NCBI GenBank assembly: GCA_009103225.1
Contig: RHPI01000638.1
Coordinates: forward strand, 1-64,000
Source of the DNA: Chlorokybus atmophyticus
Taxonomy: Eukaryota; Plantae; Mesostigma and Chlorokybus algae
DNA length: 64,000 bases
Reading direction: 5' to 3'
Part shown: one piece after another, positions 11,607 through 46,730 of the stretch
Layout of the letters: each line of letters starts with the position of its first letter
How positions within the stretch are numbered: the stretch's first letter is position 1
Position numbers and translations under genes: made by a program
The notes under the pieces: generated by a model
What the model saw: the letters and a program-made list of their open reading frames with translations, nothing else
The model's database searches: none
Told to the model about the DNA's origin: nothing

Positions 11607-13430
11607 TGGCGTTTTGAGGGTCAGTGTATGGGTGCTTCGTGCACATCATTAATTGACACAGGTGCAAACCACAATTTGGTGGAACACGCTTGGGTGAAAA
11701 GAAATAACATCACATTCACACCAGTCGCATCGTATGTACGAGCAGCTGCTTCTACTCTTAATGCTTTATGAGAAGTGATAGGACGCTTTGTTATTGCCGG
11801 TTGTAAAACACATACCACATTTATTGTGGTGAACATTGGGATTCCCGGTGTTAACTTTGTGTTAGGTGAAATGTGGCAAACCGAAGCAAGTATGCTACTT
11901 AATGCTCAAAATGGCACGTGCACTTTGAGGAGGGGGAAACGATCTTTCACCTTGAAAGTGGCACATGTGGTACATGATAACAAGCATACTACTCCACTTC
12001 TCTCCGCTATGCAACTTAAGCGTTGCATGCACAAACGAGAGGAAATGTACTTGTTACACTTACATGAGGTAACAACACCCAAAAACGATGGTGTACAAGA
12101 CCCCGTTGTGCAATCACTTACACAGCAGTATGCTGGTGTTTTTCAGGAAGAACTCCATGAGCTCCCTCCTGATAAAAACATTCACCACACCATCCCACTC
12201 GAAGAGGGAGCTAAGCCACCATGGCGTCCTATTTATAGGCTAAGTCCTTTAGAGCATGCGGAAATGGAAAAGCAGCTAAAGGAGTTGCTCGATAAAGGTT
12301 TGATTACCAAGAGTATCTCCCCATTTGGTGCACCCATTCTATTCGTGCCTAAAAAGAATGACAAGTTGCGTATGTGTGTGGATTATCGGACTTCAAATAA
12401 GGTGATTGTAAACAACAGGTACCCTTTGTCCAGAATTGATGATTTGTTTGATAGATTGTCGGGTGCAACAGTGTTTAGCACACTGGATCTGACAAGTGGT
12501 TATCATTAAATCAGGATTCCTCCTGAGGATGTGCAAAAGACAGCTTTTCGTACACCTATGGGGCATTTTGAGTATAAAGTGTTGCCCTTTGAGTTAACGA
12601 ACGCACCCACAACGTTTTAGGCAGCTATGAATGTTGTGTTTGTGGATGAGCTGTATCACTTTGTGCTCGTATCTGGATGATATTATTGTATATAGCAATA
12701 CCCGAGAGGAACACCATAAGCATTTGCAAACGGTGTCGTCAAAGTTGCAAACACAAGTTCTATGCCAATCTGTCCAAATGCAACTTTGCACAAGAAGAAC
12801 TTCCCTTTCTAGGACATGTGATTGGCAGAGACGGGTTGAAGCCTGGATTCCACAAGGTGTCGGTAGTCAAAGACTGGCCACCACCAAAAGATGTGCATCA
12901 ATTACGAGCCTTTCTAGGCTTGGCCAATTACTTCCGCAAGTTCATGCGAGGGTATTTGACTATGGCCAATGCATTAACATCTCTACAAAGTAAAGTTGTC
13001 AAATTTGGATGGACGGAAGCACATAAGAATGCCTTTTCATGCATCAAAGATGCATTGACATTGGCATCCGTGTTAGCTTTTCCAGATCCCACCAAAACCT
13101 TTTGTGATGGTCAGTGATGCATCCACCATAGGATGTGGTGCAGTTTTGCTTCAAGGCGACAAGCCGTGTGTCTATGAAAGCAAAAAATTCAACCCTGCCG
13201 AGCGTAATTACACAATCACCGAACAGGAATTACTCGGTGTTGTGCATGCGTTACGCACTTGGCGCTACTATTCAGGAGGGGTGGAATTCTCATTAATTAC
13301 GGATCACAATCCTCTTACCTTCTTTCACACGCAACAAAACCTATCCCGACGACAAGCCAGGTGGAATGAGTTCTTATCCCGTTTCACATTCACATGGCAG
13401 TATCGTCCGGACGCACATTAATTATCCATA
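11607..13430 (+). pseudogene. Gypsy pol: aspartic protease, RT and RNase H; stops and frameshifts; integrase absent
   Basis: Motifs [81 protein letters not shown]. Confidence 0.9.
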
Positions 13431-16344: not shown

Positions 16345-16481
16345 TGTTAAGATTTGCATACTATGGATCATGCATGGAGTTGGTGCAAGCACAAGCACAC
16401 ACACTCTACTAGAGCATACACACAAGGCTGATGCAAAAAAGGCGGTCTAAGGATTACAACAAAGTCACACCGCGGGCTTTG
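16345..16481 (-). repeat. Distal part of the 3' LTR of inverted copia D (remainder at 28872-29194)
   Basis: Rejoined across the Sola insertion it reads GGCGGGTATACAAAGCCCGCGG on the minus strand, matching copia A LTR GGCGGGTATATAACCCCGCGG. Ends CTTAACA. Confidence 0.8.
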
Positions 16482-16981
16482 GCGTGCCGCACGATCCTGG
16501 GGGACAACTTGTGGACGAAACAGTTGTTTGCAAACGATGTATGATTCTTGTGTTTGCAGAAAACATCTACCACCTTGTTGGAAATTGTTTGCCAACAGTC
16601 GCGCAAACATGTTGCAAAAGCTTTGCCAACAGATGCACATTCAGGGCGCAGTTTCATGTGATTTACACGAAATTTGTAAAACGTGAAGTTGTAAAGACTT
16701 AGCCAACGGATGCACATAAAGGGTGCAGCTGCACATGTTAGATGAGGGTTGTTTGAATGTTGTACTCATCAAAACTTTGCCAACAGCAATGTTTCATATT
16801 TCATAATACCTGTCACAAACCGACACGACAACATGCTGTTGCTGCCTTAGTTGGTCAATGTTTGCCAACGGTGCGGAGGTCATATCAACAATTTGCAAAG
16901 CATCCAAGTCGACTGCTCGATTGTGTGACAGCCATCATTATGAGTGTTCATACCGGCTACTAAAGCACATTTAAGATCATC

Positions 16982-19960
16982 TCATGGTGCTTGTCGCGAA
17001 TTACAAAGACAGACTCTTTGATTTTTTTGCATGTCATCCTCGCTGAGATGCATCTCTCTTGCTTCTGCTCTCGACTTTCTTGAACCGTTGGAATCCGTGC
17101 TACGCACCTCAATAGGTTCACCTATATTCTGGCAGGCTTTTGTGGCTGGGGCGGTAGGAAACATAAGTACCTCCTGGGATATTTTGCCGCTGTCACAATA
17201 GAGTCATCAACTCTACGAAAGTAGACGCCTGTGACATATAGTGTGTCTGGAGGTATAATGACACCATAAGCGTCCGGCCTCGTCGACTTGGCTGTGCTTG
17301 TGGCCACTTGTTTGGTGCATTGTAAAACCCAATATGGTGCAGAGGCCTGATACTCATCTGAGCATTTATCAGCAGCTACCACAAATGTGTCTCCGACGCT
17401 TAAGGAGAGCGCCAACGCCTCTTGGTTTGTGAACAGCAACTGCACATGGCACATGTTATGACACTTACAAGCCGACGTACAGAAGTGTAGCACTCACATC
17501 TTGCTCAATCTCTTCTCCGTCTTCCTCACTTGCGATCAACTTTTGTCGCTGCCATTTGGGAACGTGAGACTTGTTAACATGGTGGTTGTAGTCTTCGTCT
17601 AGGCAGCTGCTGCAGAAGCACGAGAACCTTCGGAAAGTAAAGCGATCTACTTCTCCAGTTCCCTTCATGCATTGAAATTGCAGAGTGCCTGGCACTAAGC
17701 GATAGGAGTGCCCGGTTTTCTTGTGATCCACCTCTTCAAGTTTGACAAGATGCCCAAAACGTTTTTAAGCTTTTGCTTGCTCTTCACGGGCTGTATATGA
17801 TGACTCCGCTCCTCGGCTAAGCACCTTTTGCGCATAATGAACTGTTGTTTCGGCATCAAAATCGCAGCACCTTTTTCGCTAGCCCTATATAGGTGCCGTT
17901 TCAGTGTTCCTCCTTGACCATCATGTTCACCCTTGCCTTGACAAGGATAATGCCATTCCATATGTATCGTGTTGAACTCGTCTACTTCCGTGTCCATGGA
18001 CGCCAAGTACCCATCCGGGGCGCTGTACTGAGCAACTTGCGCGAAATGGTTGGCACATTTGTGCTGCACTGCACAGTTGTCACTCCAGCTGATGACCTTC
18101 TGCATGTCTACGCCTCTCTCTCTTTAGTCCCTGAGCAACCGCTTCATGCAATAGCGTACAAAGAAGGAGTCCTTTTTAAGATCATCGGATATCCAAAAGT
18201 GAACCTGCATAGTGATCAAATGCTGACACCCCTTCTTATCTGCTGGCAAAGTTTGACCAATACGCGGGTTTGCGAGCTCACCTCTTTGATGCGCACCGGC
18301 TGTTGTCTGTTGATGTCTCACCATCGACATGATCTTGAGCGTGACGATAGATGAGTTCCACCAAGATCGCCATTGAGCGGTTTGCAAAATGCTGCTGCAT
18401 GAGCTCGTTGCTTGGCTTGAAAGCATAGTTCCCAGAGAAGTCAATGATACCAACGATGGTGCCTTGACAAAAGGTTTGCAAGCACTGTCTCTGCTGCTCT
18501 GCTTGCCACTGCGACAAGAAGAAGTGGAGCTTAAAGTCCTTCAGCTGCTTCTGCAAGCGGCTGATAAATTCAATAAAGGTCATCAGCTGCTTGAGAAAAT
18601 CTACTCTTGCGTACTCTGTGGCTTCACCGTTCTTTGCTTTGCCTGGCTGCATGCGCTTTACGTAGAGCCTGGGTTGTAGCAGTTGATGCTTATCTGCTCG
18701 CTCTAACGGGCATGTTGGGAATCTAATCTAGCAGCAGTACAGCGATCTCCAGAAATACAGAGGTGATTGTAGTAAACGCCGTCCATTTCTTTCTTCTCGC
18801 AAGAAGTACAGTCGAGCAAGCCGGTAATTGACGAGCCCGACTTCGGTGATTTCAATAAATGGCACTTTGTATAGATACGACATCTGCAGCGGTGTCGGCA
18901 CGTGCAGTCTTTTTGGACCTACATGCTGTTACATCTTAAAGCGCATAATGACAACCCACACATGCATCGTAACTAGTCTTACGGGACACACAATGCATTG
19001 GCATCTGCATTTTACGTGCTTTCTCTGCCGGAAAGATAAACCCATCACAAGCTCCTTCATCTCAGTGTGCTGCGAACACACGCATACGTGCCGCACGTCG
19101 CGACCTCTTACATAGTACGGCTTGACCTTCTCGAAAACTCGTTGATGCACGTCGATATCTGAATTTTCAACTCGGAACTTGAGGTACAGTGCCGTTTGTG
19201 TAGTGCCTCCATAAAAAGGCTTGGTGACGTACTCGCCAGCTAGTCTTTTGCCGGTGGACGTACGCAGCAACATCTTATCACGCTTGCATGCAGACTCTCT
19301 GGTGTTCATGATCCAAAATTCTCCGATCTTTTTACATATCTCTGATGTCACCCTTTCTTTTCGTGCACGGCGCCCTCGAGTGCTCCAGTCGTATGTTGTT
19401 TTTAATAGAATCTATGACGGCGTATGTTGAGCACAGAAGCAACCTCGCAAACTCGTGCCGAAGAACCGTTGGCAAGTAATGATCTTGCTGCTTTTATTGT
19501 AACATTCCTTGCCGTCCTATGCGCATTGGAGCGGGAGCTCTTGACGCTGTTGTATGACGACTTGAACATGTTGGATATCGTTTTGTGCGCTGAAGCTTTT
19601 TTTACAATCTCCAAATAGCTATCTTGAGCGACGGCTGCTGCATTCTTTAGTTCTTTTATCCGGGATCTCAGAATGTTGGCTTTGATGGTGTCATCTCCTT
19701 GGCAGATTTGTTCGAGTACATCTTGCATTGCGGCAACTGACTGCTTGACTCGGTATCCCTTTGCTCTTTGTCGTCCTCCTTGAGATTGGGACCCATTATT
19801 CGCAGACCTGCCATGAGATGGCAAAATTATACCAACAACGCAGGCTGTAAAGGTGAGTGAAGGCGAAGCTTGCTGACCTAATTTGAGTTGGTTAAATTTT
19901 ACCAACAACACAGGCAATGAATGCAACAAGAGCCGTCGAGTCTTGCGCTGACACAATCAT
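16982..19960 (-). pseudogene. Sola2-like DDD transposase (multi-fragment, frameshifts, probable introns; 5' end uncertain)
   Basis: Motifs FEKVKPYYVR..VCVCSQH, IIDFSGNY (D about 18440), WISDDLKKD, ISWSDNCAVQHK (D about 18079), GKGEHDGQGGTLKR (D about 17920), RRFSCFCSSC. Confidence 0.8.
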
Positions 19961-22320
19961 CAGCACTCAAGTTGGCAGATTTCACCAGCAGCTACAAAGC
20001 TTTTCCCAGCTGCCAAGCTTAAACAAGCGTGCATCATCATTCTACGGTAAGCTCTATCATAGTTTTATGCTCCAGCCCGCGTAATTGCATCAATATTGAC
20101 AATATGGTCAAGCACTAGTTGTCAAAGCTTTCCCAACAATGATGTTGCTGATGGACACAAAACAAAGTGACATGGTCCATATTGGCATTATGCGTCATGA
20201 CCACTTTTGCCAACTCTGCAAGTTGTCAGCCAATGTTGTTGACAGACATAGCATGCAAGGCACAGTGCAACGCGACTGGTAGTGCCATACCTCTGGCTTT
20301 GGCTATGCACCACACCCAGCCGCCATGCGGCCGTTGTTGAACAACATCATATCTCCAGGCCCCTGCTTGTTGCCGCACCCCTCGACTCCTCAAATGTATA
20401 CGCAACCACTGCGCACAGCAATGCGTCACTATAGAGCACAGCATGCATCCGCACCACTTGCATTTGTGTTCAATAAAACCTGCACACATAGCAAATACAC
20501 ATGCCTACCTTAAACACTTTTCTACCTCACTCTTAACTGGCAATGAACACACAACTGGACCTGCCTACACGCTTCGTAGCATGACGGCACAGCAGCGGAT
20601 GTGCACGTTATACGCAAACCAAGCTTGGTACCAGTTGAACAGCAGCAACTGGGCATCTCTACATGTGCTTCGTATGTGGATCCTAGCATTCACATTGCTT
20701 AGCTGGACCTGCCTACACGCAGCATGATATGCAGCATGAAAGCTGATCCAAGCAGTGCTTACCAGCTCTGCGCTAGCTCCCTTAGCCGCCTAGCCAGCAG
20801 CCAGCATTGTAGCGCCACCGCTCACATTGTAACTAAGCAAAGGAGAAACGCGCTACTCTAGTTTTGCACAGAGGACCCAGCTGACCCGCCCCCGCCGCCG
20901 CCCTGGCCGCCACGCCCGCCGTCGCCGTAGTCGCAGTGTGTGCATGCAAGCAGTAGCATGCAGGCAGAAGCTCAGCTAAGCTCCGAAGCTGCTGGTAGCA
21001 TGCATAAGTAATTGATGTTTTGCTTTAAAATGTTAATATTTACATAATAATATATGAGGTTTACAATGCAAAGCCCCGTAAGACAATGTGCATGCGTAAC
21101 GATATGCCTAAAACTAATCTTCAATAACTTGTCATGTTACGTAGCGGAGGGCACTTGTAATTGCAAAGCTCCGTAAGACAATATGCATGCGAATCGTTAT
21201 GCCAAAAGTGAATTGTGATGTTGAAGTTGATTTATTTACGGGATAATCAATGACCGTATCACATGTCTCTAAGAGAGCGTGTAAGGTAAGCCAGGACAAG
21301 CCAAGACAAGAGAGACAATGGGACGAGACATCCACTGACAACCGCGCTAGCAACATTAATGTTTGAGTGACCGTTAGTGATTGCTCCCCACATCACCGTT
21401 ACACAACTCAAGAGTCATCAATAAAATTAATGCAATGCATTGTAACGTTCATATATGTAAACTTACGTAAATTTGAAACAATTGGCACGTTTTGTTTGTG
21501 TAACCATCTGATTGTTAGCTTGGTTTTACATCTACGCATCACCTTGCAATTGATGTGGTAATATTTGCAATGTTCACTCGAAAATGCTTATCGCATAAAG
21601 TATCGTAAGTGCGCGTCGACATGCTACGAGTATATATACATGTGTCAATCATGACACCCATGATGTGTTGTGGTTCTCATGCTTGCATACGCATAAACAA
21701 GCTCGATGAAAGCATGCACAACACAAGCTTGCGGTAATGTCTACTGTAATTGATACACACACAATGCGCATATGCAATTGCGTCTTGTTATTACATCACA
21801 TATAAACATGCACCACACCATCTTGATAGGTACATGGCATCCATTGATGTGATGTTCACATCCATGTTACAATTGTCAATCACTATGTTGTAAGCAACAC
21901 ATGCAAATAAGACTATAAACGTATGCTATAAACATATGTGTATGCCTACAACCAAATAATTGCGTAACAACTTTACGCGTGGTTAATCGTTGGGTATGTT
22001 TATGCCTAAGCATTTGCTTGAATGTTATCAACATATGATGTATATTGGGACTTATTACTATTGTACTTACTCGCATGTGTCCACAACTGATTGATGTGTA
22101 GCATTGCTACACTCACTAAGTGGTTTATGCTATGCAGCATCATCATGAGCTTAACAAGCTTAACCCTAAAACTACGAGTTGTTGTAGGGCTCACGGAGCT
22201 CGGCAAACCCTAATGTTAGACCGACAATACCTAGGAGCAAGGGCGAGCAGCAGCGCTGAGGGCAGGGGTGAGGGCGGCGAGGGCGATGGCACGGCGGCGA
22301 GGTGCGGGCGGTGAACAACG

Positions 22321-25300
22321 ATGGGGCGATCCAAGCGAAACGCCTTGAAGGACAGCCAGAAGGACAGCCAGGCCAGCGAGAAGACGGCCACAAAAAGGCA
22401 AGTTTTTAAGCTGTGAGTGCATGTTAAGAATCAGAAACAACACGAACACGAACATGCATGTTGAGAACGAGAAACAACACGAACACAAACATGCATGTTG
22501 CTGCTGGCAACCCTGCAGCAACATGCAAGTCCGTTGCTGCTTGACAACTTGTTGTATTGTTGTACTGATTGCAGCACAGTTGCAATCAATTGCAATCAGT
22601 TGCAATAGTTCGTTGCTACTTGCAACTGTGCTGCAATCACCACAATAAGTTGCCAGGTAGCGACGAACCTGCGTGCTGCAGAGTTGCCAGCAGCAACACG
22701 CATGTTCGTTGCTACTTGCAACTGTGCTGCAATCACCACGACAAGTTGCCAAGTAGCAACGAACATGCGTGTTGCAACACGCATGTTCGTTGCTGCTTGA
22801 CAACTTGCATGTTGTGTGTGTTTTGTACATGTTGTCGCAAGCATGCAGTACGCGCAATTGATTCTTGAATAGATTGTCTCCTTGTCTGCTTGTCTTTCTC
22901 ACAATGACAATGACTAACGTTTTGTGGCTCTGCAGAAAGATAAGGGCGAGCGAAAACAAACGCAAAGCGGAGGCGAGCAGCAGCCGTGCCGAGGATGCCA
23001 AGAAGAAGCGGGGAGCCTCTATATAAGTACCGAACTGCTGCATTGCTGCTGGCAACATCAGTTGCATCAGTTGCATTGCTGCATCAGTTGCATTGCTGCA
23101 TCAGTTGCATTACTGTTTGCGTTGCTGTTGCATTGCTGCTGGGCTACCGCTGGTCTACTAAACTTGTTGTAAGCATCTTCCGCACCAACACTAGTGCTTG
23201 GTACAGAAACTATTTTTATATCGAGACGCTGTACTCTGTTGGTGGCAGCCAGCAGGGCTGTAGGTCTTGCCTATTGGCTAAATTCTGCCAACAAGCTGTA
23301 GCAGCTAGCGTTGATGTGGGTCTGTCTTCTCTTGCCTGTTGGCCAAATTTTGCAAACAAGCCGTAGCAGCAAGCAGAGATGTGGGTCTGCCTGCTCTTGC
23401 TTGTTGACCAAACAACAAGCTGTAGGTCTTGCTGCTAGTGCAATAGCCCCACTGTAAACAGCAGCTGTTAAACATCTATCATTTACGCAGTCCTCCACAA
23501 AAGTCGCGACCCCTTGAAAGGGTCTCTGACAATGACGACGACGAGGACAGGCAAGACGATATAGACACTAAAAGTAACCCCTCTGAATCGGAGGATGAGC
23601 CCGATGTTGATCAGTACGATGAGCTCAATGAGGAGGATAAAGCCTTAAAAACAGGAGAATACCACTGTGAGTTTGTTTCTCTATGCGTCTTGCAGAAATG
23701 CTCAACAATTGCTTGACAGTGTGATGTCATGGCAGGGAATACAATACACATTAAAAATGGCAGCTTTTGGAAAAGATTTCAAGAACTTGAAGACTTCGTG
23801 AGCTGTTTAAAGGAGCAGCTCAAAAATTACATAACTTGTATAAGTGGGAAGTTGTCAAAGACGAGACATTGATAAAAAACAAACAGAAGATTGTGCTCTA
23901 ATTTTTAACAATGACAAAAAAGGTATGTAGATGTCAAACTGAGATCGTTTTACCCTCTGAATTGTAGCAAGCAAGTGCTGGTGCAGAACGACCTTGAATT
24001 CCAATACCGTCTCATCTACGCATGGTCTTTTGTACCAAAAGAAGTGCGAGCGCTGGTCATTCCAGCATACATGTATATGTATATATATGCAACAAACCCA
24101 GACGACGAGTTTCTCACTGATCGCAAAGCCTTCATGTTCGACCTGCCCGTCAACAAAGCCCATTAGACACCATTAGGGACAAAGCTGGTCTGTCTTAAAA
24201 ACGGCAAAGATCTGTGTGACATAATGGTCAAAGACGTCGCCAGGGCTAAGAATCCACCGTCGCTCATCAATCTGTACGAGTCTTTGCAAGGTGCAACCTT
24301 TATCGATCGTTGAGCCCACAACAACAAACAATGTGCAACTATTATTCGCAACATTGTATATATGTTGCAGGCATGACAGCAGAGACGCTCGGCTTAAAAG
24401 CTGATCCCTCTCAGCTGCCGTCGCCAAACAAACGCAACAAGGGCAAAACACCAAAGACTGATATGGTCATCCCTGCGGATACGGAGGGTGCAGCAGGTAT
24501 GCAAGCATTGGTTTTTATATATGCAATGCCTGCCTACATTCATCGTGTTGATCAAATTTTACCAACTGTGCAGGCGATGCTCTGCCAATACAACTGCCAC
24601 CCCTGTTCTCAAACGTTGATACACATACGTATAAAATTAGCCCGTCAAAATTGCGCCAAGCTGAGGGAGCTCATCAAGCGCGCAAAATTGGAAAAAAAGC
24701 AGGTTGACTTATCTGCAACAGGCCATGAGAAGTGGCTTCAGCAAAGAGCACAAGCCATGGCTTCTGCTAGCATATAGAAACGACAAAAGACGAGAAATGC
24801 CAGTCAAAGAGCAGTATTTCAATAAGTATCACATCGACCGCGCAAATGACTTCACTTATGAAGTGCTCGGCGGCAACCACTCCTTTATCGTCAAGTCCAA
24901 GCTAGCCCAGGAGCAGCCAGATAATGAGTGGCTGCAATTTGAGTGGTGTGAGGTATGACAGCGTTCAACTCATTGCGCATAACCATAAAAAGCACGCTGA
25001 TTGTGTCAATATGTCATTACAACAGGTAGTGTCCGGGCTCAACGACGAGCAGGCCCACCTGTACGCTAGACAGCACAACGAGCAAGACGACCACAAAAAG
25101 CCGCCCACTTTTTTAACAAAAGTCGCCACCTTCCGTGACAAAGACTTCGCGCGTGGCAGCCCCGCCAATTGGCTTGCAAGCCAAAAGTCGGGCCTGGCTC
25201 AAACAAGTACTCAGATAATTGGAAAGCTTGCATGTTAGATCTGGCCTTGCTCATGGACAACGTAATCAAGTGGAAGGGCAGAAACTACAAATTCATCTTT

Positions 25301-28283
25301 AGAGAGTACAGGCCTGAAATCGCGTAAGTCTGCACTAACTATCTTTATAAATATTTTGCAGTGTCGGATACCAATGTTAATGTTAATCAACCTACGCAGG
25401 CTGGCTGTCAAACTGCCATCAACTGAGCAGGAGTATGAACGCTTCTTCCAAGTCCTTGATGATGTTGACGACATCATCAAGCCATTGCCTCGCCATACCT
25501 TTGAGCTGTTTACTCATTCGTCTGGAGAGCAGATCACGAAGGTGCTGGACGACATTAAAACTAGCATAATTGATGTTAGCGTGCACCGAAAGTCAAGCCC
25601 TATGTGCTGAATGTGCAGCGCAAAAAGCGCTTTGTGTCATATTTGGCATGTAAAACTATACCTGGCGAAGTGTTTGGAACATCTGGGTAAGTATGCATTG
25701 CATCGACTGTATACCAGACATGAATGACGGCAATACTGACAGTGTGAGCAATGTCATTAGGTCTGAAAGTCGCTTAGAGGCCCAGGCGCCAGAGTTGTAT
25801 GCTGCACAAAACCAGCTGTTTGAGACTCTTCTCAAAGGTGGCCATAACCTCTTCTTCAAGCAGCTCATGAACGTCAAAGCTGACTCGGAATCCAAGCACT
25901 CTGTAAAGCTTCTGCACATCCCATTTGCCATCGTAGACAAAGTCTGCCAGCTTGGCAAAACACCTCTCCCAGAGCCCCGTCAGGTCGGCGACCTCCTCGG
26001 CGCCGTAAGTATGCCCTTGTGAGTAGAAGCTGTGTTGCTAAACTTTTGCCAACATGTGTTCAACGCAGACATGCAGTGTCTCAACAGTTGCGCAGGTGCT
26101 TCCCTGTGCACGCTGGTTGCAATTGCCCTCAGCAGTTCCACGCCATCAAGCAAAGATGCGTACCGCATTTTCAGTCAGTGCAGAAGTTTCTTCAACAGCT
26201 GCACGATAAGGACTGCCCTTCCTTCCCTCTCGTGTTCTTTGATATTCCCTTCAAGGAAGACGAAGACCGCGACAAAGGCTTCAACATTGATGAGTTTCAG
26301 GAGATGATCGATGCACTGTGCCGTCATCATGGTGAACTAAGGTGGTGGACGCTTGTAGCCTTTGTGCCTTTGCAACACTCGAGTGCATGCAAGACTATCT
26401 TGAAAAACTCCGACGCATTCGTCGTTGAGTATACCAGCTACACGCACGCAGCTACAAGTAAGTACAGCCTGTCTTGTTTCTGCCTCTTTGTAATATTTCA
26501 CAATTGACAAACTCCACTTTGCAGAGATGCAAGTGTTTTTTGGCATATACAAAAACCAAGCGCGGACTGAGCCAGTCATCATCTCGCTGTACAATTAGAT
26601 TAATGACTCTTTGAAGGTCACTAATCTCATGACCTGGTTTAAGCTGCGTAAGCAGGATCACTTGGTCTGGCATGATCCCTCACGTCCCAGATTTTGCCAG
26701 CTAGGACCATATGAGGAAGAGTCGCCAAGCGTGGATGAGCTGAAGTCCCCCCCAGAAGATGCCAACAATGACGATACGGATGAGGGCGAGATAGAAGATA
26801 ACACTCTGGCAGTCGTAGCTGCCACGCTGCCTGAAGTTGACTTTTTTAAAGGCATAACCATTGCAACCACTGGAGCTGTAAAGCGGTGATGGCTTAAAAA
26901 GTTCTTAAGTGTTGAAGGTCAGCCACCTATCTGCTGGCAGCAAAGGCTTTGCAGCACTTTGGCCGGAGACTTTCTACTTGCCAGAAACAATGATAGCGAA
27001 ATATGGGTGCTTGACCTCGGTGCTGGAGCGGGTGGGTTAACTGACGATGCGCTCAAGTTGGGCTACAGCATCTTTGCTATGGACGATGATTCTACCAGCA
27101 TGTGCCAGCTTGAGGACAGGTTCTACAGCTACCGCAATGAACTCAAGCACTATGTGAGTCATTCAATGTTGGTAAAGTTTTGCCAACAACGTCCTGCTGA
27201 ATGACTTGCCGAAGTCAGTACTATTTGACTCACTTGCCACACTTGCTGGTGCAGCAAGAAAAGCATAGCACGCTGCGCTCAGCTGCTGCTAAAGACAAAG
27301 CAGCTGCCACGGGTTAGAACCAAGGACGAGGTCGTGCAAGAGCGCCTGATGGCCTGTTTCTCAGCATGAAGTTTGGCGATGTCAGGCACATGGCGTTTCT
27401 TTTGCGTTTGGTGGCTCAACCAGGCATAGCTGCAATCATTAAAGACGTATAAGACATGCTGGAGGACATCAAGGAATACCGCGATAGGCGCCGCAACGAC
27501 ATTTAATCAAGTAAGAAGCAGTGTGCTACTACTGTGGTTCATACTACATCGCTAACTTTGCTTACTTGGCACAGTTGACAAGTTCAGTGAAGTGAGGGGC
27601 AGCATTATTGGACAGAACTATCTAAAGCTCGAGGCCAATCTGCAGTCGCCTGCAGATCCCGTTAATGGACAACTCACTCAATTGAAGTCCAACCCAAACT
27701 CCGCATCTCGGGCAGCTTCGCTCATCACAGATGGTCAGGGTGCCAACGACAAAGCCCAAGAAACTGCGCGCAACGTTCAGGAGACACCGCAAAAAGGTGC
27801 AGAGCCGGTGACGCAGGACACAGCAAAGAACCAGCCAGCTCCATTGCCAAAGCCAGTGGAAGTGCTAATGGCAGCAACATATTAGCACTGCGCAAGTCCT
27901 CTTTGCGACATTGAAGTAAAGTCGATAAAGTCGATTTTAAAGATCCAAGCCCAACGGTTTGCCGCCATGAAGGTTGTCTCCGCCGCTTGCACCACCTGTG
28001 CTTCACAGAGTATTCGGGCTCCAAAGAAGGCAGCAACGCCCGGTGCCCAGGCAAATGGGTTGAGGCCAAGAAGAACAATAAACTAAAGCAAAGCTGGGTG
28101 GATAAAGTTTGCAAGGCTGGCAAGCCCGAAGGCGCGCTGAATGTTTGGGGCTGTATCAAGTGCATAAACTACCGCGGCTGCAACGAGTGTTCGGGTCCTC
28201 TGGCATTGATTGATGGCCAGCTAGGAGACGCCAAGCCAGTAAGCATTAGACGTGAAGTGAGAGATGTACCCCCAAAAAATTAG
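22321..28283 (+). CDS. Transposon cargo gene: basic/acidic N-terminus, ParB/Srx-like domain, beta-class DNA amino-methyltransferase-like domain and PHD-like finger (multi-exon, carries stops and frameshifts)
   Basis: Start MGRSKRNALK (22321). ParB-like QARKI..LTYLQQAMRSGF..P..YEVLGGNHS..CEV|VSGLNDEQAHLYARQHN (24625-25080). Catalytic-like LVFFDIPF (26241). WQQR..WVLDLGAGAGG..ALKLGYSIFAMDDD SAM motif (27007). C-terminal C..C..CRHEGC..HHLC..C. Splice junctions visible. Confidence 0.7.
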
Positions 28284-28871
28284 ATGATGTGACGTGTAGT
28301 GGCAGTGAAAACAGTGCCCTTGTAGAAAGGCAGTTGCCCTGTGTATACAGCCTTGACACTGTATGTAGTGCGCACGTTGCCTTGTTGTGATATTGTCACT
28401 AAAGCCCAATGTTATGTGCACACCCTCATCTGCTTGTATAGGTAGCTGTTGGCAAATCTTTGCCATCAGTTAGAAGATCATGCCGCACAAGATCAAAAAA
28501 TCATGCGTTTTTTGAACTGCTTGTACACATAGCTATAAGCAAACCTTGGCCAACACAGATACAATTTCATTCTGATTTCACTACAAGGTAGGCTCAGCAA
28601 TGTGCATTTTAGTTGGCTTTACTTGGCCAACAACAGTCAGCCTTACACTTCCAACGCATTTTGAAAAAAAAAAAAGCTGCTAGGAGACACAACAACACTT
28701 GAGAGACAATGCTACATACCTTGCTGATTTCCTCGCTGCAACTTACTTTGGCACATAACAACTGATGTCAAGCGCTAAGCAAAGTAAAGTAGTTGTCTCG
28801 AGATCGATGTCAAAATTCATGATGTACGAACAACTCCGTCCATGAGTTGTCCCCCGGATCGTGCGACACGC

Positions 28872-29597
28872 TTTGTATACCCGCCAGTTCTGCACCCGTC
28901 TACTCTAGAAGTCACCACAACTTCTACACTCAACCGATTCCTGCGCTCTAAGTTGCACCACGTAGCTACTTTTAAAAGCTTTCCAACAAGCTATAACACG
29001 CGCCAAACAATGATGTAACAACCGAGCTACAACGTTTCTTCTACAGCGCCTGGAAGTCTTTAGACTCCGGACTCGACTCCGCGCCTGAAACAATTTCGAC
29101 TAAAGTCCTCGCCTGGACTTTTCTCGACTGGCACCTTCTCGCGGCTATTCTTATCCACAGGGCAAGCTGACCGGATACAAGAATATATTCAACACTCCCA
29201 TGCGGGCAGCTTGGCCTTTAACACCTCCAATGCCAACTCCTTGCGTACTTATGCGCGACGAACTCCCATGCCATCCTTTGCTCTTTCAACCATCTTGAAG
29301 ACACTTCCCGCACCTCTCATGAGCGCCTCCTTAAAGCTCTTCACTTGCACACCCTTGTTGCAACTCTCATGGTCATTTGCATGTGCTCCCACGTGCTCAC
29401 TCTTGGCAACGTCCTGCACAACACCACCACCATGCTCCTCCTTCTTGTCCTTGCTGATGGTAATGCCTGCTGCAGCTCCCACGGGCTCCGAGACTGCATC
29501 TTCAGCCTTCTTAACACCATTCGCAACCTCCACACGTGGATCACTCCACCACTCGTATGTGACGCGCTCTTGGTCACCATCACTTGAGCTCCCGAGG
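28872..29597 (-). mobile_element. Inverted copia D remnant: proximal 3' LTR (28872-29194), PPT and about 400 bp of internal sequence
   Basis: Minus strand GGCCAAGCTGCCCGCATGGGAG|TGTTGAATATATTC matches the copia A PPT/LTR junction. The internal piece encodes KSFKEAL...RAKDGMGV*. Confidence 0.85.
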
Positions 29598-29639
29598 TTA
29601 GGGTTAGGGTTAGAGTTAGGGTTAGGGTTAGGGTTAGGG
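29598..29639 (+). repeat. Interstitial telomeric array (TTAGGG)7 with one TTAGAG variant
   Basis: Directly read. Lies at the junction between the copia D remnant and the resumed copia C. Confidence 0.95.
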
Positions 29640-39661: not shown

Positions 39662-41396
39662 AGCCCCCACCTCTATGAACAATATTGCAAGCGCTGCGCC
39701 GACGACTCCAAGAGCCACGCCGATGAACATGTGCCCCACTGTCTGGCGGCCAAGGTCGCTGGGGAACTTCCAGATGCCTCTAAATACATGATATCATTAT
39801 TCTACAGGAGTGTCAATAACATACTGACACGCGCGCGCGCACGGGCACACGCACGCACACTCAGCCACACTGCACTTTGCACACACACGCACGCATGCCC
39901 TCCCCCCCACCCCANNNNNNNNNNNNNNNNNNNNNNNNNNNNNNNNNNNNNNNNNNNNNNNNNNNNNNNNNNNNNNNNNNNNNNNNNNNNNNNNNNNNNN
40001 NNNNNNNNNNNNNNNNNNNNNNNNNNNNNNNNNNNNNNNNNNNNNNNNNNNNNNNNNNNNNNNNNNNNNNNNNNNNNNNNNNNNNNNNNNNNNNNNNNNN
40101 NNNNNNNNNNNNNNNNNNNNNNNNNNNNNNNNNNNNNNNNNNNNNNNNNNNNNNNNNNNNNNNNNNNNNNNNNNNNNNNNNCCCCCCACACACATCCGCA
40201 CCCACCCCAGCTTGATCCCCATGACGGCGTGGTAGGCTGCGTCGCAGGCCGTTGCGCTCACCACCGCGTAGGTCATGCTCTCGTAGTACTCCAGGCCCAT
40301 GCGATGGGCGACCTGCTTGCATGCGTTGAGTTGTGTTGGTACAGGGTGATGACAACAAGATCAACATCAGCACCTCCAAGGCGAAGAGCGCGCCGCCGAG
40401 GAACACTCCGAAAAATGCCGCAAATCCACAGGCCTGGGGAAGATGAGAAGGTCATGGTTGGGGCCCCCACAGGTGCATGCGGTGCGTGCATCGACATGCG
40501 CACATTGTTGCATCGTGCGAGAATCGTGCAACCATTCACTCCACATTTTTCATGCGCTGTAGCCGAACGAAGTGCGCGCGCCCGTGTAGGTGCGTGGACT
40601 CACCATGCCACACAGCGTCGCGGTCCGCAGCACCCCCCTCCCTCCCTTCTGCCCCAACCACTTTGTGGCCACCCACCCGCCCACGATTGCGCACATCAGC
40701 ACGATCGGGGCCTCCGGTCCCAGGGAGCCGCCGCCGGTGATCGAAAGGAGAGAGACCAGGAGCATCGGGAGGAAATGTTGGGTGGGGACGTAGCCCTTCT
40801 CATGCAGGCACTCCACGATGAGCGGCAGGTTCCCCGGCTCGTCTGGCAGCAGCGCAAGCGCAACTCCAACAGAAAATCCTAGTAGTGTGGAAACCAGGGG
40901 CACGTAGAGGTGGTATAGGGGGTGAGGCTGGCCTTGTGTGAAAGGAAGGAGGAGACGAGTGGGCACGTACTCCCACACTATGTGGAGGCAGGACTCCAGG
41001 GCCACGTAGTACGCGCACGACACAAGCGCGCACAACACGCTGACGGGAGAGGGGGGAAGTGGAGATGATATTGGTTTGTTGTCTTGGGCTCAGCGAAGGT
41101 GCACCGACACATGCACGCGCGCATCGCAACACTCACCCGAGCACAAGCGCCAGGGTCAGGCTGGTTGCATGCACGCTGCGTGGCACAGGGATGCAGCGCA
41201 CGGCCTCCCTTAATCTCTGTGTTACGAACGATGTCACAGCACTGTTTGCGTCCCTGCCTCCGCCCACCTTCTGCCTCTCCCTCTCCCACTCCCTCTCCCT
41301 CTGCATATCCTCCTCGCCAGAATTGCAATTCTTCTTGCCCGCCTCCTCGTCGTCCCTGACCTCCTCCACCGCAGCCAACAAAGGCCGCCCATCCAT
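38208..41396 (-). CDS. CLC-family anion channel/H+ antiporter, bacterial-like (multi-exon; contains an N-gap)
   Basis: Motifs EPGNLP, LSITGGGSLGPEAP, AFFGVFLGGALFALE, GLEYYE, LLPQTFMWGE, KLLAISLAEHGGFR, LLPSVLAACLTS. Confidence 0.8.
39594..39657. repeat. (AG)n microsatellite in a CLC intron
   Basis: Directly read. Confidence 0.95.
39915..40180. other. Assembly gap (N run); further gaps at 54066-54213, 59857-60380 and 62990-63118
   Basis: N characters. Confidence 0.99.

Positions 41397-43801: not shown

Positions 43802-46730
<2,929 letters not shown>

Follow-up and report, generated by a model that had tools for sequence, protein, structure and literature searches.

A Sola2-type DNA transposon of Chlorokybus atmophyticus with a candidate ParB-like, methyltransferase-like and Cys/His-finger accessory gene

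How transposons may interfere with the epigenetic control of their hosts can be seen in mobile elements equipped with DNA- or chromatin-modifying enzymes of their own, and a locus of the green alga Chlorokybus atmophyticus raises the question of whether an element of the Sola2 type could do so through a single fused protein. The locus lies in a stretch of 64,000 nucleotides (assembly GCA_009103225.1, contig RHPI01000638.1, positions 1 to 64,000; hereafter the window), in which a Sola2-type element of 12.4 kb occupies positions 16482-28871 with both ends intact. The element holds a transposase gene and, divergent from it, a second gene that we call the cargo gene. We propose, with a confidence that stops just short of calling it probable, that the cargo protein combines a ParB/Srx-like module lacking the nucleotide-binding arginine, a permuted amino-methyltransferase resembling the beta class and a PHD- or RING-like finger, and that it would methylate the DNA of the element.

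Boundaries of the element and its transposase

The ends of the element were placed by an inverted-repeat search, which returned two adjoining arm pairs at these positions, and by direct alignment of one end with the other. The terminal inverted repeats (TIRs), the target-site duplication (TSD) and the transposase gene are as follows:

16478-16481: left TSD copy, TTTG, directly outside the left TIR
16482-16517, plus strand: left TIR, 36 nt, identical to the right end at 32 of 36 positions, with one gap
17012-19793 (approximate), minus strand: gene of the Sola2-type transposase, in about 10 exons that encode at least 723 amino acids, by codon-usage exon chain and block match
28837-28871, minus strand: right TIR, by alignment to the left end
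28872-28875: right TSD copy, TTTG, directly outside the right TIR

The alignment of 16482-16517 with the reverse complement of 28837-28871 runs over 36 columns (32 identities, 3 mismatches, 1 gap), and TTTG stands outside both ends. This bears out a sequence-only reading of the same DNA, which had described a 12.4-kb element with TIRs and a 4-bp TSD.

On the minus strand, a codon-usage chainer connects 10 exons from about 19793 to 17012 without an internal stop, giving at least 723 amino acids. Candidate catalytic blocks (IIDFSGNY, ISWSDNC and CQGKGEHDG) are followed by a C-terminal Cys-rich region. Two authentic Sola2 transposases, Sola2_DFa-2 and Sola2_PPa-1, are printed in the supplement of Bao and Jurka 2013 (PMC3627910), and comparison with them by inspection finds five blocks in the published Sola2 order, all within the one exon chain:

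Block 1: published MDFKEN, window IDFSGNY
Block 2: published SILGMVIYHR, window MAILVELIYRH
Block 3: published FSDVLNH, window ISDDLKKD
Block 4: published FFWSDGAKHFKS, window ISWSDNCAVQHKC
Block 5: published YHGKSDVD, window CQGKGEHD

A Cys-containing region upstream of these blocks likewise corresponds to the published Sola2 transposases. A Pfam scan of the minus-strand open reading frame (ORF) pieces gave no match, as is expected because the Sola superfamily has no Pfam model (PMC5751038). A transposase exon returned no candidates in a word-indexed protein search and no relatives in metagenome contigs. For one transposase piece, the neighbours in a protein language model (Atlas) are eukaryotic DUF7869 clusters, with models resembling ISAzo13-type DDE transposases. 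Judged by its ordered blocks, the minus-strand gene is a Sola2-type transposase gene, in keeping with its earlier assignment to the Sola type. We further note that neither a second copy of the element nor an empty site was found within the 64-kb window. The element is a structurally complete and probably autonomous DNA transposon of the Sola2 family with an accessory gene beside its transposase.

The cargo gene and its predicted domains

The cargo gene lies on the plus strand and comprises the following features:

23456-28280, plus strand: cargo gene of about 19 exons, encoding about 1,050-1,100 amino acids, from a dynamic programming chain scored on codon usage together with hand-curated exons
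24574-25152, plus strand: ParB/Srx-like region in three exons (24574-24628, 24703-24952, 25026-25152), where GGNHS replaces the GxxR box
26088-26457, plus strand: exon with a motif IV-like strand and loop (PLVFFDIPF), then an alternating helix/strand pattern; putative N-terminal half of a permuted domain
26525-26877, plus strand: short exon (26525-26574) and acidic linker exon (26656-26877) between the methyltransferase halves, with the least certain junctions
26941-27153, plus strand: exon with motifs I and II (VLDLGAGAGG ... IFAMDDD); putative C-terminal methyltransferase half
27915-28239, plus strand: Cys/His finger ORF, PHD- or RING-like (C-x4-C-x4-H-x2-C ... W-x-C-x2-C)

The sequence-only reading had taken this for a spliced, head-to-head gene of about 6 kb; the divergent, multi-exon arrangement stands, and the span comes down to about 4.8 kb. 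With the codon-usage chainer the frame grows to about 1,089 amino acids (23456 to 28277), laid out as an acidic N-terminus, basic tracts, the ParB-like region, a helical middle, the methyltransferase-like region, acidic and low-complexity linkers, and the Cys/His finger. The basic tracts, noticed earlier for their likeness to nuclear localization signals, are indeed present as PSPNKRNKGKTPK and RKKRF.

Viewed as raw ORFs, the gene shows apparent frameshifts and in-frame stops at 26596 and 26887. Twelve hand-curated exons across 24371-27153, joined through 11 GT-AG introns (77, 74, 73, 62, 76, 44, 56, 83, 67, 81 and 63 nt), give an uninterrupted 675 amino acids over 2.8 kb, and the apparent stops and frameshifts are for this reason taken to be intronic. 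A gene broken by such lesions was rejected, all of these positions falling in GT-AG introns of typical size. The introns fall mainly into a class of 56-83 nt, beside two candidates (25575-25618 and 26575-26616) that measure only 42-44 nt. Either introns as short as this are tolerated in this alga, or the two junctions have been misplaced. The model is weakest at the start codon, at the junctions around 26458-26655 and in the stretch 27154-27575.

The uncertain start codon and the 27154-27575 stretch, the two short introns and some weak splice sites bear on a reading in which introns placed too permissively on a decayed pseudogene create an artificial frame, and in which this copy makes no functional protein. 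The sequencing runs that match the cargo gene also count here, as they are low-depth DNA only and include no RNA run and no splice joints that would support the exon model. Against the pseudogene reading, eleven GT-AG introns within a narrow size range (44-83 nt) clear every stop and frameshift over the 2.8 kb, and the TIRs and TSD are well preserved. In the two matching runs, contigs are identical to the window, and two further pieces of about 88% identity cover parts of two cargo exons; in these paralogous pieces, read by eye, the frame and one acceptor site seem preserved. We consider decay of the gene very improbable and continue with a cargo gene that is predicted to encode a protein.

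The methyltransferase-like region was compared with a beta-class profile built from E. coli YhdJ, 15 annotated phage N6_N4 methyltransferases and two YhdJ homologues (P0106 and P0116). On the spliced region of 285 amino acids this profile gives two collinear matches, motif IV and then motif I, with a full-sequence P of 2.6e-4, aligning SFPLVFFDIPF with svDliitDpPY (residues 42-82) and VLDLGAGAGG with VlDpfmGSGtT (residues 237-262). Among 3000 global and 3000 local shuffles, one of each kind reaches the score, and four splice variants of the region all return the same value. Alignment to the profile by hhalign extends end to end over 229 columns (P 0.0018), a result that none of 120 shuffles reaches. 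PrmA, the class I control, matches motif I only, and a profile from YhdJ alone is uninformative (P about 0.05).

A similar arrangement appears when the 903 ORF pieces of the window are ranked. The ORF with FFDIPF comes first against the N-terminal half of the beta-class profile (7.8 bits), and the ORF with motif I, on the same strand and 385 nt farther downstream, comes third against the C-terminal half. A combined motif I and II pattern has a single match among these pieces, the motif I ORF, where 0.005 would be expected. The FFDIPF exon, which has no glycine-rich GxGxG loop, has as its Atlas neighbours N6_N4_Mtase (30 of 100), MT-A70, N6_Mtase and a cluster of site-specific DNA methyltransferases, with scores of only 0.79-0.87. 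The order of secondary-structure elements in the region is compatible with a permuted fold of the Rossmann type.

In the spliced region the motifs stand in permuted order, IV before I, with weak statistics. This reading is favoured because no motif IV-like string occurs downstream of motif I in any frame, and because too few residues remain there: the low-complexity linker follows motif II after only about 27-80 mostly helical residues, not enough to make up strands 3 to 7. In a conventional class I S-adenosylmethionine enzyme without permutation, those strands would lie downstream of motif I, and the FFDIPF match would be due to chance. Motifs I and II are indeed of generic class I form, and the best matches of the motif I exon, all sub-threshold, are to class I enzymes (Methyltransf_25, in Pfam at E 0.055, PrmA and RsmC). 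Moreover, the motif IV match on its own is not significant once corrected for the 903 ORF pieces (about 0.14-0.23), which also weighs against the amino-methyltransferase proposal as a whole, and 27154-27575, not confidently modelled, leaves room for up to about 80 amino acids. An unpermuted enzyme fits poorly with the shortage of downstream residues, with the fall of the best N-half and third-best C-half scores on neighbouring same-strand ORFs in permuted order, and with the amino-methyltransferase neighbours of the upstream exon. We judge it improbable; on these motif positions, the region is rather probably permuted.

Several further results weigh against a permuted DNA methyltransferase. 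No Pfam family reaches threshold on any ORF piece or curated exon, and PF01555 (N6_N4_Mtase) has no match on whole exons even at E up to 10. A PDB sequence search with three exons gave nothing significant (RsmC at E 0.08 for the motif I exon). A search of 1.84 billion representative proteins with the FFDIPF exon returned two spurious repeat proteins and no homologue, and the metagenome and viral contigs scanned hold no relatives of it. A single-sequence AlphaFold model of 26088-26456 has a predicted local distance difference test score (pLDDT) of 48, and its Foldseek matches are meaningless. The region was, in addition, first chosen by the same motif that the profile rewards. As for the motifs themselves, motif IV reads DIPF and not (D/N/S)PP(Y/F/W), with the first proline replaced, motif I is not the DPFxGSGTT form, and the HP.QKP helix motif is absent. 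Of the amino-methyltransferase-like domain noticed from the letters alone, what survives is a pair of collinear beta-class matches, below every Pfam threshold and with a non-canonical motif IV.

The non-canonical DIPF and the missing HP.QKP and DPF signatures would also suit a real, conserved accessory protein whose methyltransferase-like domain lacks catalytic activity or has RNA or protein as its substrate; such a protein would serve as a DNA- and chromatin-binding adaptor for the transposon. Loss of the ParB GxxR arginine, described below, points in the same direction, and methyltransferase domains that are carried by transposons and probably inactive are known (Iyer et al., PMC4738411; compare DIRS1 elements). 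Against an inactive or non-DNA domain, motif IV keeps its Asp and its aromatic residue, motif I its glycine-rich form and motif II its acidic residue. The N6-adenine methyltransferases Erm and KsgA work with N(I/L)PY, so a residue other than proline is tolerated at position 2 of the motif. We regard this adaptor role as unlikely, though it deserves more weight than the unpermuted enzyme, and retain a putative DNA amino-methyltransferase.

The ParB call is weaker than the methyltransferase call. By hhalign, TYEVLGGNHSF ... NDEQAHLYARQHNE falls on the GHgR box (box II) and box III with a P of 0.005 (none of 120 shuffles), and the Atlas neighbours of the region are DUF3723, DUF6551, ParB_N and DGQHR-like, with scores of 0.89-0.95, the last three at 0.89-0.93. 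The ParB_N domains used for the profile come from genuine phage fusions of ParB_N with N6_N4_Mtase, for example L018, whose architecture is confirmed by Pfam. The region has no Pfam or PDB match, and the ParB ORFs are not top-ranked by the ParB_N profile among the 903 ORF pieces. Telling against a ParB module are also an hmmsearch with a profile of 11 phage ParB_N domains, whose P of 0.12 does not improve on that of the reversed control, and an AlphaFold model of the ParB-like exon with pLDDT 45. GGNHS aligns with GHgR, which turns the GxxR arginine into serine; mutation of this arginine abolishes nucleoside triphosphate binding in tested ParB-fold proteins (PMC12704722). The ParB/Srx-like domain of the sequence-only reading is kept here in a reduced form, one that agrees with hhalign and the language model, has neither Pfam nor hmmsearch behind it and lacks the arginine.

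At the C-terminal end, the finger ORF matches zf-RING-like in Pfam at E 0.003, which does not reach the cutoff. Set beside the PHD pattern (C4HC3, with Trp two residues before the seventh Cys), its first Cys pair was not located and its spacer of 50 residues is long. The Cys/His cluster that the earlier reading had called a PHD finger is present at 27915-28239, as a putative finger for which a PHD identity is plausible.

Palindromes, proposed function and surroundings

One candidate binding site for the cargo protein is a 22-bp palindrome, TGTTGGCAAA-NN-TTTGCCAACA. It occurs at 8 sites with at most 3 mismatches, all of them within the element, where 0.02 would be expected by chance; a ninth copy is more degenerate. 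These copies and the non-coding region between the genes are distributed as follows:

16576-16597 and 16610-16631: two subterminal palindrome copies, 95-130 bp from the left end
19887-19907 (degenerate) and 20117-20138: two palindrome copies upstream of the 5' end of the transposase gene
20139-23264: central non-coding region between the two divergent genes, with inverted-repeat clusters at 22485-22807 and tandem arrays at 22418-22500 and 23063-23115
23265-23412: 2.3 copies of a 65-bp unit in tandem, immediately upstream of the cargo gene, with the palindrome in two units (23272 and 23337)
26033-26054: palindrome copy inside the cargo intron 26005-26087 (plus strand)
27167-27188: palindrome copy in the intron after the motif I exon
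28447-28468: palindrome copy near the right end, about 400 bp from it

Within the central region, 22485-22807 is a dense set of nested inverted repeats, among them a perfect pair of 26 nt and, centred at 22774/22775, a palindrome of 33 nt; this cluster is distinct from the 22-bp palindrome.

The palindromes could be subterminal and internal binding sites of the transposase only, with no relation to the cargo protein. Subterminal repeats are common in cut-and-paste elements, and that role suits the copies nearest the ends, at 95-130 bp from the left and at about 400 bp from the right. It accounts less readily for the other six of the nine copies, which lie at a distance from the ends, upstream of each gene and within two introns of the cargo, and for the inverted-repeat arrays that red-algal elements with ParB accessory genes also have beside the accessory gene. 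A role for the transposase and a role for the cargo protein are not mutually exclusive, and we take the transposase-only reading to be quite possible, if tentative.

Under our own proposal, the cargo protein would enter the nucleus and be brought to the DNA of the element, either through binding of the palindromes by the ParB-like module and the adjacent helical region or through binding of chromatin by the finger. It would then methylate exocyclic amino groups in or near the element, producing N6-methyladenine (6mA) or, less likely, N4-methylcytosine (4mC), and this methylation may influence the transcription or silencing of the element. Such a mechanism would parallel that of phage ParB-N6_N4 methyltransferase fusions and of the accessory genes of red-algal giant transposons. 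Self-marking by 6mA or 4mC under the guidance of a chromatin reader is a reasonable but conjectural idea.

At least one chlorophyte, Chlamydomonas, has 6mA as a mark of its active genes. If the proposal is true, the picture of transposons with their own modifying enzymes would widen to another transposon superfamily and another algal lineage, and the system would be compact, made up of a single protein and a single 22-bp site. If the domain is inactive or not directed at DNA, the locus would still be a well-bounded case of cargo capture by a Sola2 element, of modest interest.

The element lies among other repeats. Its right flank is copia-like and resembles only the 3' region of a copia element: 28925-29217 matches 1843-2110, in reverse orientation, downstream of a copia ORF that opens the window. 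From this match, the Sola2 element sits beside or within copia-derived sequence. The copia ORF itself (6-1820, 604 amino acids, reverse transcriptase/RNase H) has its nearest named relatives in chlorophytes (Myrmecia bisecta, Tetradesmus, Chromochloris and Chlorella), at 51-57% identity, and one JGI protein at 84%. Inside the copia-like sequence to the right of the element, an interstitial (TTAGGG)n of about 7 units, one of them a variant, occupies 29598-29639. Upstream of the element, an ORF at 11775-12509 with gypsy-type protease and reverse-transcriptase motifs is a retrotransposon fragment. Further away, a very long microsatellite at 45584-46220 (repeated VRAC/THAR in translation) produces spurious ORFs of 200-330 amino acids on both strands, and unknown bases at about 39900-40200, seen as X in the translated ORF 39731-40882, mark an assembly gap.

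Comparison with known systems

The carrier most closely recalls the chimeric Sola2-Fanzor1 elements of Dictyostelium fasciculatum and Polysphondylium pallidum, which measure 10-15 kb and have a large second gene, 4-bp AT-rich TSDs and TIRs of 12-22 bp (PMC3627910). Shared with the present element are the 4-bp TSD, short imperfect TIRs, a large second gene that brings the total to 10-15 kb, and the ordered transposase blocks, in a transposase of 800-900 amino acids there and at least 723 as chained here. The cargo is Fanzor/TnpB in those elements, whereas here it is ParB-like, methyltransferase-like and zinc finger; the TSD of the present element (TTTG) is not strictly A/T, its TIRs are longer (36 nt) and its host is a green alga. 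These published elements also correct the earlier statement that Sola elements are usually described with a transposase only.

For the cargo, a close parallel is found in red algae, where giant Plavaka, Mutator, Zisupton and Fanzor elements carry PAG2 (N6-adenine methylase and SET) and PAG3 (ParB and 2-oxoglutarate (2OG) oxygenase) beside inverted-repeat arrays (bioRxiv 10.1101/2025.02.11.637652). In both cases a giant cut-and-paste transposon holds modules of ParB type and adenine-methylase type, inverted repeats lie by the accessory gene (here the palindrome-bearing 65-bp units at 23265-23412 and the intron copies), and binding or modification of the element's own DNA or chromatin is proposed. 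The present element differs in joining both modules and a zinc finger in one polypeptide, in its Sola2 transposase and in a host that is not a rhodophyte, the comparison with PAG2 and PAG3 being by description only. Pfam scans detected no SET or 2OG-oxygenase family on any cargo exon.

Fusions of ParB_N with N6_N4_Mtase are common in phages and prophages, for example the methyltransferase of Coprococcus phage NatCom_29765 in L018 (PMC12704722; PMC4738411). The algal cargo would share their order, a ParB N-terminal domain followed by a permuted methyltransferase with motif IV before motif I, as Pfam confirms for L018. It differs from them in some 250 additional residues that separate the modules, an acidic insert within the methyltransferase, a C-terminal finger and many introns, as well as in the absent GxxR arginine and in DIPF for DPPY. 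It also stays below the Pfam threshold, and for that reason common descent with the phage fusions is not shown.

Among eukaryotic proteins, a chlorophyte-type Dam family with an N-terminal helix-turn-helix (HTH) of the ParB type is known from certain chlorophytes and chytrids (Iyer et al. 2016, PMC4738411), and likewise combines a ParB-derived DNA-binding part with an adenine methyltransferase. Compared by description, that family is unpermuted, resembles M.EcoKI/M.TaqI and uses the ParB HTH, whereas the present gene is apparently permuted and matches the ParB N-terminal (Srx-like) domain; nor is that family described as transposon cargo, unlike the gene reported here. Prokaryote-like DNA adenine methyltransferases encoded by retrotransposons (bioRxiv 10.64898/2026.05.21.726589) and the bdelloid N4CMT-chromodomain enzyme (PMC8885841) also tie a bacterial-type amino-methyltransferase to eukaryotic mobile elements and a chromatin-reader domain. 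Those enzymes have clear homology and shown activity and occur on retrotransposons or as a host gene, whereas the present case is a DNA transposon with an orphan sequence and a putative enzyme.

The strongest version of our proposal would have one polypeptide in which a degenerate ParB module finds the 22-bp palindromes, an orphan permuted methyltransferase writes 6mA or 4mC and a PHD-like finger reads chromatin, all independent of the red-algal PAG genes and the retrotransposon Dam-like enzymes; taken as a whole, this version is doubtful. The sequence-only reading had also known of no description of this combination. The published red-algal ParB and N6-adenine methylase cargo narrows that claim to the single fused gene with a Sola2 partner, which we did not find in the literature consulted. 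What is new here is the Sola2 carrier, the single fused gene with its finger, and the orphan sequence; transposon cargo for self-modification already has precedents, and in that respect the element is not unprecedented.

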